From Prasinococcaceae sp. CCMP 1430 (lineage: Eukaryota; Plantae; Prasinodermophyta): 64,000 nt of DNA. The position numbers and the translations under genes were made by a program. The stretch spans positions 1 through 64,000 of the forward strand of contig RQSC01000554.1 of the NCBI GenBank assembly GCA_013416795.1, written 5' to 3'. The notes beneath the pieces were generated by a model. The model was not told where the DNA came from. It searched no databases and saw only the letters and a program-made list of their open reading frames with translations. This document shows, piece after piece, positions 6,035 to 11,532 of this stretch (position 1 is the first letter of the stretch; each line of letters begins with the position of its first letter).

Positions 6035-6650
6035 CGGCGTGCGCGGCAGAGGGGCGAGAGGGCAGCGGCGCGCTCGCGGCGCGCATGCGCTCGCGCACAG
6101 CGCGCGCAACGGACATGGAGGCCAGGCACGCGCGAGCGAGCGCAGCGAGGGCTTGCGTGCCGATGAGCACGGCGAGTCCTCGCGCGCGGCGTCCCGCCAC
6201 GCGCGGACCTCGATCGATGGTAGCGAGAGCTGCACGACGTGGCATTGTACGCATATATATTGACGCCACGGCTGCGAGCTTGATACCTCAAGGCTTAGTG
6301 TGAACACTTATTTTGTATATATTTCACTCGGCGGACGCGTCCAGGGCGCGACGCCAGCCGGGCAGGCGCGCCGCGGCTCATGCGCAAGTGATGGCGGCTG
6401 CCTGCATGGCGTGGCCCGCGAGGGCATCGCGCGCGCTGCAAGCCGCGCTCACACGCCATCCCCGCAATCCCCGCAATCCCCCCCCCTCCCTCCCCTGAGC
6501 AGGGGCTGGTGCGCATGCCGCGTGGTCCCAGCGCCGCCGGCGGTATGGCGGGAGGGAACGACGATTCCGAAACGGCGTCCGAAACGTCCGCGCGCCATAC
6601 GCGCGACGCGCGCGCCCCAGCGCGGGCGCGATGGCCGCGGGCGCGAGGGC
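5575..6650 (+). repeat. Copy 2 of the 1,076-bp duplication (contiguous with RMC1, probably the genuine locus)
   Basis: Begins 4 nt after the single N at 5571 and runs into the RMC1 start codon. Confidence 0.95.
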
Positions 6651-8673
6651 GGCCTCCGCGCCCGTCTGCCACGTCCGGCTGGCGCCGATCCTGCGCCTGC
6701 CGCAGCGCGCGGGCGAAGGCGCGGGCGCGGGCGGCAGCCACGGCGGCGGCAGGGCGGTGTTCTACGACGACTGCGCGCGATGCCTCATCGCGGTGGAGGG
6801 CTCGCAGCTGAGCATCTACGACGCCGTCGCGGACGTCGGCGCGAGGGGTGGCGACGGGGCGGTCGTCGAGGAGGGAGGCGGGGTGGGCGGCATCGATGGA
6901 GAGACGCAGCCGAGCAGCGTGATGTTCGTCAACGCGGGGCCGGTGCTCGGCGCGTGCTTGCGTTCGGACCGCGGTGTGCTCGCGCTGCGCCGCAGCGCGA
7001 ACGAGGTGGAGTTCATCGACCGGGCCGTCGGCGCTGGCGGCGGCTCGGGCGCAGGTGGCGCCCGCGCGCTCCCGCCGTCGTCCCCGGCGCAGGTCGCGGC
7101 CGGCAGCAGGCCGCAGTCCCCTGCGGCTGCCGCCGCGCGCCACCGCGAGTTCTGGCAGCGCACGTCGAGGCCCGGCGCGGCCATTCTGGCCATGTTCTGG
7201 TGCGAGGGATGCCCGGAGGCGGACATGGTGTTTGCCACCACCGCGGGGTTGGAGCTCTATCGGCTCGAGGGCGAGGTGGGCAGCGCGGCTCGGAGCATGC
7301 GGCTGGTGTCCACGAAGAGGCACGTGGGCACGCAGCTGGCGGCGTACACGCACGCGTCGCGGCTCGCGCTGCTCGGCAAGGGCCGGCGCATGAGCGGCTA
7401 CCAGTTCACGGCGCAGGGCCTCGCCAGGGTGCCCTCCTTCGACCTCCTCGACGATGGCGATGGCGACGCAGGCCACGGCGACGCGCGCCCCCCCGCGCAG
7501 GTCGAGATCGTGACCGCCTATGGGCGGGTGTACTGCGCGCACCACACGCCGCGCTCCTTGACGCTCCACCGCTTCTACCGCGACGCCGTCGAGCCGCAGC
7601 TGCGCCTCGCGCTGCACGCGCCGCTGCGCAGCCTCGTGGCGGCCGACGACGCGCTCGTGCTCGTCTTTGCCGCGCGAGTGGCCATGGTGGTCGATGCGGG
7701 CTCGGCGCGCTTCGACGCGATCGCCGCGCCGCTGCCGCTGGGCTCGACGGACGGCGCTGCCGAGCGCGATGCGGGGGGCGCCGATGGCGGCGGCGCAGAG
7801 GGTGACGGCCTCCAGATCTGCGCGCCGAACTGCCTCGCGTACTCGGCGCGCACGGGGTGCGCGTACCGGCTCGAGCTCGACCTGGCGGCGCTGGCGGCGT
7901 CCGCCTCGGACAGGGTGGAGGCGGTGGGATTCCTGCAGCGCCGGCAGCACCGGCCGGAGCGCGCGCGCGCCCTCACGCTGCGCATGCTTCGCGCGATGCT
8001 CACGGAGCGCGAGCCGCTCACCGCGGTGGGCGCCGCGCTGGACGTCGTCTGCGCTGCCCACGCGGCGGCTGCGGGCGCCGCGGGGCGCGCCCCGCGGCCG
8101 GCGCGCCACGCGTCCCCGGACGACCTCGTCGCGGAGGTGCTCCTGCCGACCGAAGAGCAGACCCTCGACGCGAACGACCTGCCCTACGTGGCGCACGCGG
8201 CCATCGAGCTCGCGCGGGCCTGCCGCGCCGCCGGTGGCCCCTGCCCCGTCGAGGCGCAGCTGGTGGTGGTGCGCTGCCTGCACAGGGCGAACAGGGAGGA
8301 CGAGCTGTGCGCGCTGGTGCGCTCCGGCGCCTTGGGACGCTCGGCGGAGCTCGGCCGGGCGCTGCTCGGGCTGGGCAGCGAGCGAACCAAGCCGTTGGCG
8401 CTCGACGTGCTCCACGAAACGCGCGCGCGCGGCGACGTGGCCGTGGCGCTGGTCGCCGCCGGCGAGGCGCCCTCGGCGCTCCGGTACGTGCGCGAGCATC
8501 GCGTCGAAGCCGTCACGCCAGCCTCCTTTCTGGAGACGTCGGCCGCGAACGGCGGCAGCGCGCTCGCGTCGGCCGTGAAGTTCTGTCGGGCGCACGTGCC
8601 GGCCTTCGAGCAGCGGGAGGAGCTCGCGGCGTGGCGAGAGAGGTTCGACGGGCTGTCGGTCGACGACGGCTAA
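6631..8673 (+). CDS. RMC1: Regulator of MON1-CCZ1 (Mic1/C18orf8) homolog, 680 aa
   Basis: Single ORF with an N-terminal propeller-like region (LALRRSANEVEF, ILAMFW, VFATTAGLELY, YTHASRLALL, TAYGRVYC) and a C-terminal Mic1 region (LALDVL...VALVAAGEAPSALRYVR). Confidence 0.75.
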   Translation: MAAGARAASAPVCHVRLAPILRLPQRAGEGAGAGGSHGGGRAVFYDDCARCLIAVEGSQLSIYDAVADVGARGGDGAVVEEGGGVGGIDGETQPSSVMFVNAGPVLGACLRSDRGVLALRRSANEVEFIDRAVGAGGGSGAGGARALPPSSPAQVAAGSRPQSPAAAAARHREFWQRTSRPGAAILAMFWCEGCPEADMVFATTAGLELYRLEGEVGSAARSMRLVSTKRHVGTQLAAYTHASRLALLGKGRRMSGYQFTAQGLARVPSFDLLDDGDGDAGHGDARPPAQVEIVTAYGRVYCAHHTPRSLTLHRFYRDAVEPQLRLALHAPLRSLVAADDALVLVFAARVAMVVDAGSARFDAIAAPLPLGSTDGAAERDAGGADGGGAEGDGLQICAPNCLAYSARTGCAYRLELDLAALAASASDRVEAVGFLQRRQHRPERARALTLRMLRAMLTEREPLTAVGAALDVVCAAHAAAAGAAGRAPRPARHASPDDLVAEVLLPTEEQTLDANDLPYVAHAAIELARACRAAGGPCPVEAQLVVVRCLHRANREDELCALVRSGALGRSAELGRALLGLGSERTKPLALDVLHETRARGDVAVALVAAGEAPSALRYVREHRVEAVTPASFLETSAANGGSALASAVKFCRAHVPAFEQREELAAWRERFDGLSVDDG

Positions 8674-8764: not shown

Positions 8765-8974
8765 TAAAAAAATCTACGTTGTACAGGGACGCGCGAGCGC
8801 GCACGCGCGCGCGCGCGCGCGGGCGCTGCGCGATGCGCGGGCGCGCCGGCCCACCGCCCTCGCGTGGCGGCCGCGCCGCCCTCGGCTGGCCTCGTCTCGC
8901 GGCGCCGAATGTGCGCTATACGGACGGCGCCTGTGGCGGGCGTGTCCCACCGGGCCGCGCGAGCACGCTTCGAG

Positions 8975-9676
8975 CTACGCGGACACCGAGTCGGCGTCGT
9001 CCCCACCCTGGCCCTCGCTGGCGACCCCGCCGCTCTTCGGCTTGTGCAGGGGCACGTGCAATCGCCAGTCGGGGTTCAGCGAGGAGAAGGGTATTTGCGC
9101 GAGGCCCTGCGCGCCCGCCGCCGCCATCGCGATGCCGCCCACGCCGCCGTCGTCTGTGACCTCGACCGTCCCCGACGCCGCGCTCGCGCGCTGCGCGTGG
9201 TGCGTCGGGAAGGGCTCGCGCACCACCGCGGAGGGCCGCCTCCGCCGCTGCCCGCCGCCCGAGTCCCCGTCGCTGCCGTCGGCGTTGGCCCACCGCCCGC
9301 GCCGCCTCTTCTCCTGGCCGTCGAGCTCGGTGCTCGTCTTGCGCCAATAGCGCCCCGTCTTGAACGCTCGGCCCCAGCCGGGCCCGCCGTTGTGCGTGCG
9401 CGCGAGGTGCTCCATGTCGCCGAACTGGAGCGCCCACGGGCAGTAGCGCAGCCAGTAGCGCAGCGCCGTCTCCTCGGCGTGCGGGATCTCCTCCACGGCG
9501 TCGTAGCGCGGCGCCGCCTCGCCGGTCATGCGCGCCACCTCCCACGCGTCGGCGTGGTATTCCTTTTTTTTTTTTTTTGAGAGGGGTGTGGGGGGTTCGC
9601 GAGGGCAGGTCATCGGCGGCGAGGGGGCGTGCGCCTGAGTCAGTCGCGGGCGCACGGACCACGGCGCGAGGTGGCC

Positions 9677-9715
<39 letters not shown>

Positions 9716-10549
9716 TGGTGTGGTGGCGTGTGGGTGGGTGTGCATCTGTGGAGTCTAACTATGAGCGCCGGCATACTGCGCAGGAGCCGCCGAAGGGACT
9801 TCGGCCGCACCCTGGCCGACCCGGGCTCAACTCAATCCTCCAGGCTGCGCGGCAGGCTGTGTGTGTGCGTGTGTGTCGGGCAGGCGCGCGCGGGGTGGGG
9901 GGGTGGGGGGAGGAGCGCGCTTTTTTTCCCTTCGCTCGCTCGTGCCGCGTCGCCCGCGTCGCCTCGCGCGCCGCACCTTGGATATCTGCAGGGGCCCGAT
10001 CGACGCGCCGCCGTCGCCCACCGGCGCGGGCATGATGTTGGACGTCTCCACCATGCGCAGCGCGTCCAGGAGCGGCCGCGTGCGCGCACAGCTGCGGTAG
10101 TACTCGACGTCGCGCGTGTGCGTGAACATCCCCCAGAACGTCGTGCGGTCGGCGTCGCGCGCCGGCTCGAGCATCGACCGCGGGGCCCGCAGCTGCCGCA
10201 GGCCCGTGGCCAGGTCGCGGCGCGGGAGGTACAGCTCCGCGCCCGCCCTGAGCGCGTCGCCGCCGACGACCGCGTCCGGGTTGTGCCGCGCGATCTCCTC
10301 GGGCGTGGTCGCGAACGCGCGCGCCAGCGCCGCCACCGTGTCGCCCTCGCGCACGGCGACGTGGCGCGCCGCGTAGTTGGGCACGACGACGCGCTCGCCG
10401 GCGGCGATGTGGTCGTCGTCCGACGGCATCGCGTTCGCGCGGCGCAGCGCGCCTATCGACACGCCGTGCTGCTCGCTGATCGACCACAGCGAGTCGCCCG
10501 GCAGCACGCGGTGGGTCTTGGGGCGGGCGCCCGCGGCGGTGCCGGTCAT
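8975..10549 (-). CDS. 2xLysM + i-type (destabilase-like) lysozyme/transglycosylase-fold protein; exons 10549-9977 and 9562-8975 (~386 aa)
   Basis: LysM1 THRVLPGDSLWSISEQHGVSIGALRRAN; LysM2 VAVREGDTVAALARAFATTPEEIARHN; catalytic-like domain LLDALRMVETS...VGDGGASIGPLQISK|EYHADAW...RYWLRYCP...LARTHNGGPG...YW. Phase-0 intron with GTGCGG donor. Confidence 0.8.
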
Positions 10550-10616
10550 GGGGGCTTCCTCTTCTCGTCGCAGGGATGCGGGCGAGCTGCGTGGTGGAGT
10601 GCTGCGTGGTGGTGCG

Positions 10617-10617
<1 letters not shown>

Positions 10618-10657
<40 letters not shown>
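10618..10657 (+). repeat. (TG)n microsatellite abutting an assembly gap
   Basis: About 20 TG units; similar tracts at 9679-9712 and elsewhere. Confidence 0.9.
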
Positions 10658-11532
10658 NNNNNNNNNNNNNNNNNNNNNNNNNNNNNNNNNNNNNNNNNNN
10701 NNNNNNNNNNNNNNNNNNNNNNNNNNNNNNNNNNNNNNNNNNNNNNNNNNNNNNNNNNNNNNNNNNNNNNNNNNNNNNNNNNNNNNNNNNNNNNNNNNNN
10801 NNNNNNNNNNNNNNNNNNNNNNNNNNNNNNNNNNNNNNNNNNNNNNNNNNNNNNNNNNNNNNNNNNNNNNNNNNNNNNNNNNNNNNNNNNNNNNNNNNNN
10901 NNNNNNNNNNNNNNNNNNNNNNNNNNNNNNNNNNNNNNNNNNNNNNNNNNNNNNNNNNNNNNNNNNNNNNNNNNNNNNNNNNNNNNNNNNNNNNNNNNNN
11001 NNNNNNNNNNNNNNNNNNNNNNNNNNNNNNNNNNNNNNNNNNNNNNNNNNNNNNNNNNNNNNNNNNNNNNNNNNNNNNNNNNNNNNNNNNNNNNNNNNNN
11101 NNNNNNNNNNNNNNNNNNNNNNNNNNNNNNNNNNNNNNNNNNNNNNNNNNNNNNNNNNNNNNNNNNNNNNNNNNNNNNNNNNNNNNNNNNNNNNNNNNNN
11201 NNNNNNNNNNNNNNNNNNNNNNNNNNNNNNNNNNNNNNNNNNNNNNNNNNNNNNNNNNNNNNNNNNNNNNNNNNNNNNNNNNNNNNNNNNNNNNNNNNNN
11301 NNNNNNNNNNNNNNNNNNNNNNNNNNNNNNNNNNNNNNNNNNNNNNNNNNNNNNNNNNNNNNNNNNNNNNNNNNNNNNNNNNNNNNNNNNNNNNNNNNNN
11401 NNNNNNNNNNNNNNNNNNNNNNNNNNNNNNNNNNNNNNNNNNNNNNNNNNNNNNNNNNNNNNNNNNNNNNNNNNNNNNNNNNNNNNNNNNNNNNNNNNNN
11501 NNNNNNNNNNNNNNNNNNNNNNNNNNNNNNNN

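Follow-up and report, generated by a model that had tools for sequence, protein, structure and literature searches.

A LysM-fused, i-type lysozyme-like gene of a prasinodermophyte alga, its conserved green-lineage family and a possible role in plastid peptidoglycan turnover

Contig RQSC01000554.1 of Prasinococcaceae sp. CCMP 1430 (Eukaryota; Plantae; Prasinodermophyta; NCBI GenBank assembly GCA_013416795.1) carries, at positions 8975-10549 on the minus strand, an intron-containing gene in which two LysM domains precede a domain related to the invertebrate-type (i-type) lysozymes. The stretch analysed, referred to as the window, comprises positions 1 to 64,000 of the forward strand and has a G+C content of 69.8%. 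An earlier note, made from the letters alone, had read the same gene and its coordinates hold exactly, with open reading frames (ORFs) and their translations giving a product of 386 amino acids. It is a spliced, expressed nuclear gene of this GC-rich marine alga, and we are highly confident that its C-terminal domain belongs to the i-type lysozyme superfamily. The gene is composed of the following features.

10549..9977, minus strand: exon 1, codons 1-191 (from the translation, Pfam and RNA-type contigs collinear over 9976-10607)
10379..10513, minus strand: LysM domain 1, residues 13-57 (best Pfam stretch, profile positions 1-43 of 43)
10223..10366, minus strand: LysM domain 2, more divergent, about residues 62-109 (second Pfam stretch; boundaries approximate, from alignment A1)
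9977..10147, minus strand: N-terminal part of the lysozyme-like domain, residues 135-191 (from alignments A1-A4, the PDB profile alignment and residue mapping)
10046-10048, 10013-10015 and 10001-10003, minus strand: codons of Glu168, Asp179 and Ser183, respectively (from residue mapping)
9976..9563, minus strand: intron of 414 nt, GT..AG, phase 0 (from the sequence and from RNA-type versus DNA-type contigs)
9562..8978, minus strand: exon 2, 195 amino acids, followed by the stop codon at 8977-8975 (from the translation)
9332..9562, minus strand: C-terminal part of the lysozyme-like domain, residues 192-268, reading EYHADAW ... RYWLRYCPWALQFGD ... ARTHNGGPGW ... RYWRK
9392-9394, minus strand: codon of His248 (from residue mapping)
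8975..9331, minus strand: low-complexity tail, residues 269-386, and stop codon (from the translation and alignment A1)

Exon 1 opens with the start codon (MTGT start) and encodes both LysM domains; after a linker comes the first half of the lysozyme domain, which ends with ...VGDGGASIGPLQISK / GPLQISK. Exon 2 reopens directly behind the acceptor AG with GAA TAC CAC and keeps an uninterrupted frame to the stop. The translation thus contains LDALRMVETS, the VGDGGASIGPLQISK stretch continued across the junction by EYHADAW, then RYWLRYC, ARTHNGGPGW and RYWRK. Homologues that are uninterrupted at this point read GPLQIS-xx-YHxDAW, and the two exons abut there with 0 residues missing or extra (alignment A1). 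The intron itself contains (GT)n/(CA)n microsatellites and an A-run directly before the acceptor. An origin from an introner-type repeat was considered and rejected, no second copy being present in the window or in the fetched loci.

The spliced junction is found in assembled RNA-type contigs of three studies, X1 record 1 (1270 nt), X2 record 4 and X3 record 7. X3 is on record as a marine metatranscriptome RNA-Seq library and is the firm RNA evidence, the RNA status of X1 and X2 being a guess. Each of the three contigs jumps from 9553 to 9976 with 8 letters between; these are bases 9554-9561, and because positions 9562 and 9976 both read C, the joins 9562/9977 and 9561/9976 give the same sequence. 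The joint was read from the contig table, as masking of the poly-T and (GT)n stretch (9554-9725) made the aligner end early. In a DNA-type run of the same organism (X8), a contig continues from 10607 on into the intron, as far as 9751 (9751-10607). The X1 contig is collinear from 8950 to 10607 except for the intron, and there is therefore no further intron in the coding region. The phase-0 spliceosomal intron and the nuclear nature of the gene, both claimed in the earlier note, are accordingly confirmed by the spliced form in contigs from X1, X2 and X3 and by the retained intron in X8. A database search for the window's own annotated protein yielded no more than ORF calls of prokaryotic style that run on into the intron (P0016, P0017).

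At the 5' end, the frame upstream of the ATG remains open across a (GT)n run and reaches an assembly gap (10658-11532). The gap, 875 N long, begins 108 nt from the start codon (region 10550-11532), which places the promoter and the far 5' untranslated region outside the assembly. A relative from the Tara Oceans metagenomes (L001) shares 62% identity with the window protein as a whole and 85% over the catalytic domain. Its start codon lies at the corresponding site (MPERGARPRTHRV, where the window has MTGTAAGARPKTHRV); 29 codons before this ATG there is an in-frame stop, and no other ATG occurs in the interval. Position 10549 is taken as the start, in which case the protein would lack an N-terminal presequence, as MTGTAAGARPKTHRV runs straight into LysM1. 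Most orthologues likewise start within 10-25 residues of their first LysM, and no signal peptide was found in any orthologue inspected. The N-termini of P0009, P0021 and P0202 begin MGxxxS and that of the window protein (MTGTAAG) does not; MGxxxS is the usual N-myristoylation pattern and would put a protein on the cytosolic face of a membrane.

The statements on Pfam models and structure that follow rest on the orthologues and on the two exons taken separately, the spliced protein having been built only for the tree and for pairwise comparisons. In exon 1, Pfam LysM (PF01476) matches in two stretches, with E 6.6e-19 and 68 bits (cut-off 20.9), and the two repeats recognised in the earlier note are thus real. 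LysM is also the only match that the single exons give in Pfam and NCBIfam: neither half of the lysozyme domain matches any model, and exon 2 matches nothing. Peptidase_M23 has no match, and the NCBIfam DipM matches span the LysM part only, at 30.6 bits against a cut-off of 900. In the low-complexity tail a short ...GLAQIPFxxLNPDW motif is kept in the Tara relative, with the tails 44% identical over an alignment with 34 gaps; the RNA-type contig of X1 is collinear down to 8950, through the end of this region.

The kinship of the C-terminal domain becomes evident from profile comparisons. The exon-2 half alone has i-type lysozymes as its four best PDB matches (E 0.12-0.62). A profile of green-lineage sequences (A2) finds i-type lysozymes only, at E 1.2e-7, with the next match at 0.57. 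An exhaustive search with the green profile yielded 1830 cluster representatives at E up to 0.001, and with relatives added a 78-sequence profile (A4) was obtained. Against PDB this profile matches four lysozyme sequences (3ab6, 4pj2, 8bbu and 2dqa) at E 1.7e-19 to 9.6e-17, aligning over full length (profile positions 8-114 on chain residues 8-112); up to E 0.01 it matches nothing else. Pfam Destabilase (PF05497) matches 9 of 12 family members; its cut-off is passed by the Mesostigma paralogue P0040 (27.6 bits) and by phage-like relatives (32-48 bits), and P0019 has a precomputed match to it.

The predicted fold is in agreement with this. The closest uninterrupted orthologue, P0002, which shares 58% identity with the exon-2 part of the window's domain, was used for modelling. 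A first model from a 12-row alignment, with a predicted local distance difference test score (pLDDT) of 69.6 and only weak structural matches, was superseded by an AlphaFold2 model of P0002:103-237 built on the 78 sequences, with pLDDT 94.1 and a predicted template modelling score (pTM) of 0.89. In Foldseek the top six matches of the P0002 model are all i-type lysozymes (template modelling score 0.55-0.68, probability 1.00). With VIA-align the i-type lysozymes score Z 12.9-13.3, at a root-mean-square deviation of 2.6-3.0 Å over 106-110 residues, the next class being the SLT lytic transglycosylases at Z around 10 and all others lying at or below 10.3. The Foldseek comparison called for in the earlier note has therefore returned a lysozyme fold, for the orthologue model, and together with the PDB profile matches and the catalytic residues in place it upholds the i-type/destabilase-like assignment.

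Conserved residues point to catalysis. In the PDB alignment, the invariant Glu of the family aligns with the catalytic Glu of the i-type lysozymes and the Asp of a G-D-x-G motif with their catalytic Asp, the pair numbered Glu34/Asp46 in leech destabilase (PMC10126035). Glu168 and Asp179 of the window occupy these two columns, in which Glu is invariant and Asp is present in at least 90% of the 78 sequences. Furthermore, the ratio of nonsynonymous to synonymous substitution rates against the Tara relative is 0.24 in the catalytic region and 0.45-0.61 in the LysM region, linker and tail. Taken with the conserved Glu and Asp, this low value indicates purifying selection that supports an active enzyme, and the domain probably cleaves glycans. 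The whole window protein contains only 2 Cys residues, both within the lysozyme domain. The many conserved Cys residues and disulfides and the secretory signal typical of the animal enzymes are missing from it, and the likeness to Cys-poor phage-like relatives that the earlier note had drawn is borne out.

The combination of LysM with this domain is distributed across the green lineage. It is present in streptophyte algae (Mesostigma viride, Chlorokybus, Closterium), in bryophytes (two species each of Marchantia and Riccia, Sphagnum, Physcomitrium), in lycophytes (Selaginella, Diphasiastrum) and in the green algae Picocystis and Myrmecia bisecta. Chloropicon primus also carries the lysozyme domain, as do a partial Pteridium model and a partial Ginkgo model, the latter with no LysM detected. 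Several picoeukaryote contigs contain the gene, in one case among clearly eukaryotic neighbours. Over the part of the domain encoded by exon 2, named members share 51-58% identity with the window, and many of these proteins bear the automatic UniRef/UniProt label "lysozyme". Many core chlorophytes are absent from the named matches. In angiosperms, no member was found by a word search in which the Mesostigma domain was run against 5.8 billion proteins (51 candidates, 24 matches). As members from Mesostigma to Selaginella are 53-68% identical in the domain, an angiosperm orthologue would be expected to share search words, and the absence is likely real.

The earlier note had not recognised this architecture from plants, a statement that does not stand in view of its occurrence in algae, liverworts, mosses and lycophytes. 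As to whether the architecture is already widespread and characterised in green algae, which the note had raised as a challenge to its own reading, it is widespread, and no description was found in the literature searched. A full-text search, with most subscription journals outside its coverage, found no paper on LysM plus i-type lysozyme proteins in plants or algae. A 2009 catalogue of plant LysM architectures does not contain the combination and states SLT plus LysM to be confined to bacteria (PMC2728734). The gene in the window is a well-documented member of a known enzyme kind, and its family is labelled in databases, with no study found in the literature searched. Two candidate connections were rejected. 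PPASP (van Baren et al. 2016) is not the same protein, as it has a transmembrane segment plus a C-terminal LysM, and a pattern of flagellated sperm fails as the phyletic explanation, since the non-flagellate Closterium, Picocystis and Prasinoderma group also have the gene.

A second green clade bears the lysozyme-like domain at the N-terminus, and several of its members then have IQ motifs. Long proteins of this clade are P0036 (Selaginella, 704 aa), P0033 (Closterium, 670 aa), P0039 (Spirogloea, 1356 aa) and P0083 (943 aa), with IQ calmodulin-binding motifs in P0039 and P0083, so that Spirogloea is among the IQ-bearing members. The Selaginella and Closterium members range from 636 to 833 aa; shorter proteins of Mesostigma and Chlorokybus and a partial Pteridium model also fall in this clade. 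To our knowledge, the combination of a lysozyme-like domain with IQ motifs has not been described.

The history of the family was approached with a tree of 80 domains, including the spliced domains of the window and of the Tara relative; it is unrooted (displayed at the midpoint), is without animal i-type sequences and carries bootstrap values that are not fully settled. A branch supported at 100/99 separates all identified green sequences from 51 short metagenomic proteins. LysM-type proteins form a set supported at 96/85, and within it the window groups with the Tara relative, P0002 and sequences of Picocystis, Chloropicon and picoeukaryotes (95/80), apart from Mesostigma, Chlorokybus and land plants. 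The order is roughly that of the species, and this suggests vertical inheritance from an early green ancestor. The short relatives outside score 87-110 bits against the green profile and the animal lysozymes about 35 bits (in the PDB search). On the question of bacterial versus animal origin raised in the earlier note, the green genes are closer to phage-like than to animal sequences.

In four genomic contexts of the short relatives, small or family-less ORFs are densely packed, most of them co-oriented in three of the four; contigs reach up to 176 kb, and one context includes a family-A DNA polymerase. These contigs are read as uncultured phage-like elements. The short relatives have no match in PHROGs or in cultured phage records. 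A pattern scan of 185,579 species genomes yielded no bacterial relatives, a weak negative with its two narrow patterns. Hundreds of small Destabilase-domain proteins of 135-200 aa occur on phage-like contigs (L004-L006, L009-L010, L012), and these may represent an unrecognised class of lysins.

The locus of the Tara relative differs from that of the window in two further respects. Its intron (L001:3930-4044) is of phase 2, 115 nt long, bounded by GTGAGT..CAG and located inside a Ser codon nine residues upstream of that of the window, which follows Lys191; each of the two genes is uninterrupted at the other's intron site. The differing sites are a case of recent intron gain, loss or sliding. 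Conserved downstream synteny was looked for and rejected, as the neighbours differ. In the window the downstream neighbour is a homologue of RMC1, a MON1-CCZ1 regulator (6631-8673, plus strand). In L001 a JmjC/cupin gene follows and then a PF00144 beta-lactamase-family gene (7034-8254, minus strand), about 2.5 kb downstream of the lysozyme gene.

On this basis a function can be proposed. The product would be an intracellularly made, Cys-poor enzyme of 386 aa, in which the two N-terminal LysM domains would hold a glycan containing N-acetylglucosamine (GlcNAc) and the C-terminal i-type (destabilase-family, GH22-like) domain would cut its backbone. Glu168 is predicted to serve as the acid and Asp179, on the hairpin GDGGASIGPLQI, as the second carboxylate. 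The substrate would be peptidoglycan, with the alga's own plastid peptidoglycan layer as the main target, and the enzyme may act in turnover or splitting of that layer during plastid growth and division. The range of the gene resembles that of the complete plastid peptidoglycan pathway, which makes remodelling of the plastid wall the leading guess, and from the phyletic pattern we infer that this substrate is favoured over the other proposed roles. Supporting this, Chloropicon primus was added to the taxa with a complete pathway by MacLeod et al. (PMC10784329). The explanation as a whole, including plastid peptidoglycan as the physiological substrate, is nonetheless held tentatively, as a possibility worth pursuing.

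Several observations weigh against it. The orthologues score 13.8-20.2 bits against PF05497, below the curated cut-off of 26.2, as do most green members, and the modelled structure belongs to orthologue P0002 rather than to the window protein itself. For no family member did the literature searched yield an enzyme assay or a localisation. The window protein has no N-terminal presequence and, with orthologues also starting near LysM1, the cytosol is the default location. The peptidoglycan layer sits between the two envelope membranes. Moss hydrolases already cited for chloroplast division are DipM (PMC4015805) and, as cited second-hand in PMC13075712, MltB and VanY, and hence no gap in the pathway demands this enzyme. 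In addition, MacLeod et al. report full pathways in Asparagus and Citrus; no family member was found in either, and the phyletic match is imperfect. With regards to location, the missing transit peptide is a genuine objection but does not rule against the plastid envelope, because moss DipM1 lacks one too: although neither a signal peptide nor a transit peptide is predicted for it, DipM1 undergoes processing in vivo and is found at the chloroplast surface (PMC4015805).

An antibacterial or digestive lysozyme, directed against the foreign peptidoglycan of invading or attached bacteria or of fragments taken into the cell, is one alternative, and would parallel the animal i-type lysozymes and the phage lysins. 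The PDB titles of animal homologues name them as muramidases of defence or digestion, the nearest non-green relatives lie on phage-like contigs where a lysin is expected, wall hydrolases of bacteria and phages are typically built of LysM and a glycan-cleaving domain, and the gene is expressed in marine metatranscriptomes. Classical secretion is, however, unlikely for a protein with 2 Cys residues whose inspected orthologues have no signal peptide; the loss from angiosperms, and the absence from the named matches of many core chlorophytes that meet bacteria, would be left unexplained; and a tree that approximately tracks the species across roughly a billion years, with the gene in one or a few copies, suits housekeeping better than an arms race. 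This role is considered rather unlikely. Another GlcNAc polymer could also be the substrate, be it chitin-like material of the own wall, chito-oligosaccharides or cytosolic GlcNAc glycoproteins. LysM binds chitin oligomers besides peptidoglycan (PMC2728734), the i-type lysozyme 3ab6 was crystallised with NAG3 according to its title, GH19 and GH23 chitinases are among the fold-search neighbours, and a cytosolic location would fit intracellular glycoconjugates. That the gene is kept in spite of very different walls (naked Mesostigma-type flagellates, desmids, mosses, lycophytes), and that the retained Asp and hairpin are those of muramidases, makes such a substrate distinctly unlikely.

The chemistry may differ as well as the substrate. 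The motifs of SLT enzymes are ES / GLMQ / AYNAG, and the order E-S ... G-x-x-Q-I ... Y ... H-N-G-G in the present family resembles them, which raises a lytic transglycosylase (SLT/GH23 reaction, 1,6-anhydroMurNAc product) in place of a hydrolytic lysozyme. Two phage-like relatives have weak SLT matches (E about 1e-3), SLT enzymes are the second-best structural class at Z around 10, and a feature search of the ESM Atlas returns clusters of LysM plus SLT. Pfam SLT (PF01464), however, matches neither the window exons nor any green member, the i-type lysozymes lie some 3 Z units above the SLT enzymes and are the sole PDB sequence-profile matches, and the second carboxylate, Asp179, is nearly invariant in the family; we know of no second catalytic carboxylate in family-1 lytic transglycosylases. 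A transglycosylase is accordingly regarded as quite improbable. Very improbable is a peptidase-like (isopeptidase) activity of the kind proposed for leech destabilase, or a non-catalytic binding module. Ser183, His248 and Glu168 do align with the proposed destabilase triad Ser51, His112 and Glu34, and all three are conserved in the green clade; the triad is itself a hypothesis in its source paper (PMC10126035), though, and the same residues belong to the glycosidase cleft. A mere binding module is hard to reconcile with the strict conservation of both carboxylates.

The i-type lysozymes are usually viewed as an invertebrate family, and the present sequences constitute a conserved green branch that is LysM-fused, Cys-poor and apparently without a secretion signal. 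The branch extends from the earliest-diverging green algae to Ginkgo, and no member was detected in flowering plants. The gene is a concrete candidate for a plastid-wall hydrolase beside DipM, MltB and VanY. A wider scenario, in which a phage-like lysozyme was captured before the green split, fused to LysM, kept for the chloroplast wall and lost where that wall was reduced, is doubtful; if true, "invertebrate-type" would be a misnomer and the family would have an organelle-maintenance branch in plants. Should the plastid link fail, there would still be a predicted intracellular hydrolase of non-flowering plants directed at peptidoglycan or chitin, and phage-like lysins would clearly have an old offshoot among eukaryotes. 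For the window alone, the outcome is the annotation of a real, expressed and correctly spliced family member.

Animal i-type lysozymes are small, stand-alone, Cys-rich, secreted proteins. Those of known structure and destabilase (PF05497; 2dqa of Tapes japonica, 3ab6 of Meretrix lusoria, 8bbu/8bbw of Hirudo medicinalis) share with the green domain the same fold, the catalytic Glu and Asp, the GP.QI hairpin and an aligned HNGGP motif, at a sequence identity of 23-28%. Unlike them, the window protein has 2 Cys residues and no signal peptide, with two LysM domains before the lysozyme domain and a long tail after it. The green "lysozyme" proteins of Marchantia polymorpha (MPTK1_6g09090, P0004), Physcomitrium patens (P0009), Selaginella (P0022), Mesostigma (Mv05488, P0019) and Picocystis (P0175) have the same architecture and the same invariant residues. 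Differences among green members concern the number of LysM domains, one to two, and the tails, which in land plants carry ...HIPFPxPxLES and in the alga ...AQIPFxxLNPDW. The small phage-like Destabilase proteins (P0044, P0050, P0051, P0057) are the best non-green matches, are Cys-poor and pass the Pfam cut-off; they differ in being single-domain proteins of 135-200 aa without LysM, across the 100/99 branch.

Two further systems resemble the gene in build. In bacterial and phage LysM plus SLT enzymes (MltD-like), LysM anchors stand before a glycan-cleaving domain of the lysozyme superfamily, as here, yet that domain is of another catalytic family, whereas the green members have a second catalytic carboxylate and no SLT match; the clusters returned from the ESM Atlas, with scores of at most 0.91, are only analogous ones of this type. 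The DipM/NlpD proteins with LysM plus M23 (Cyanophora, Physcomitrium; PMC4015805) are likewise nuclear-encoded, LysM-bearing wall enzymes of similar phyletic range. DipM joins LysM to an M23/LytM peptidase domain and is of cyanobacterial origin, whereas the gene in the window joins it to a predicted glycosidase domain whose nearest relatives are phage-like.

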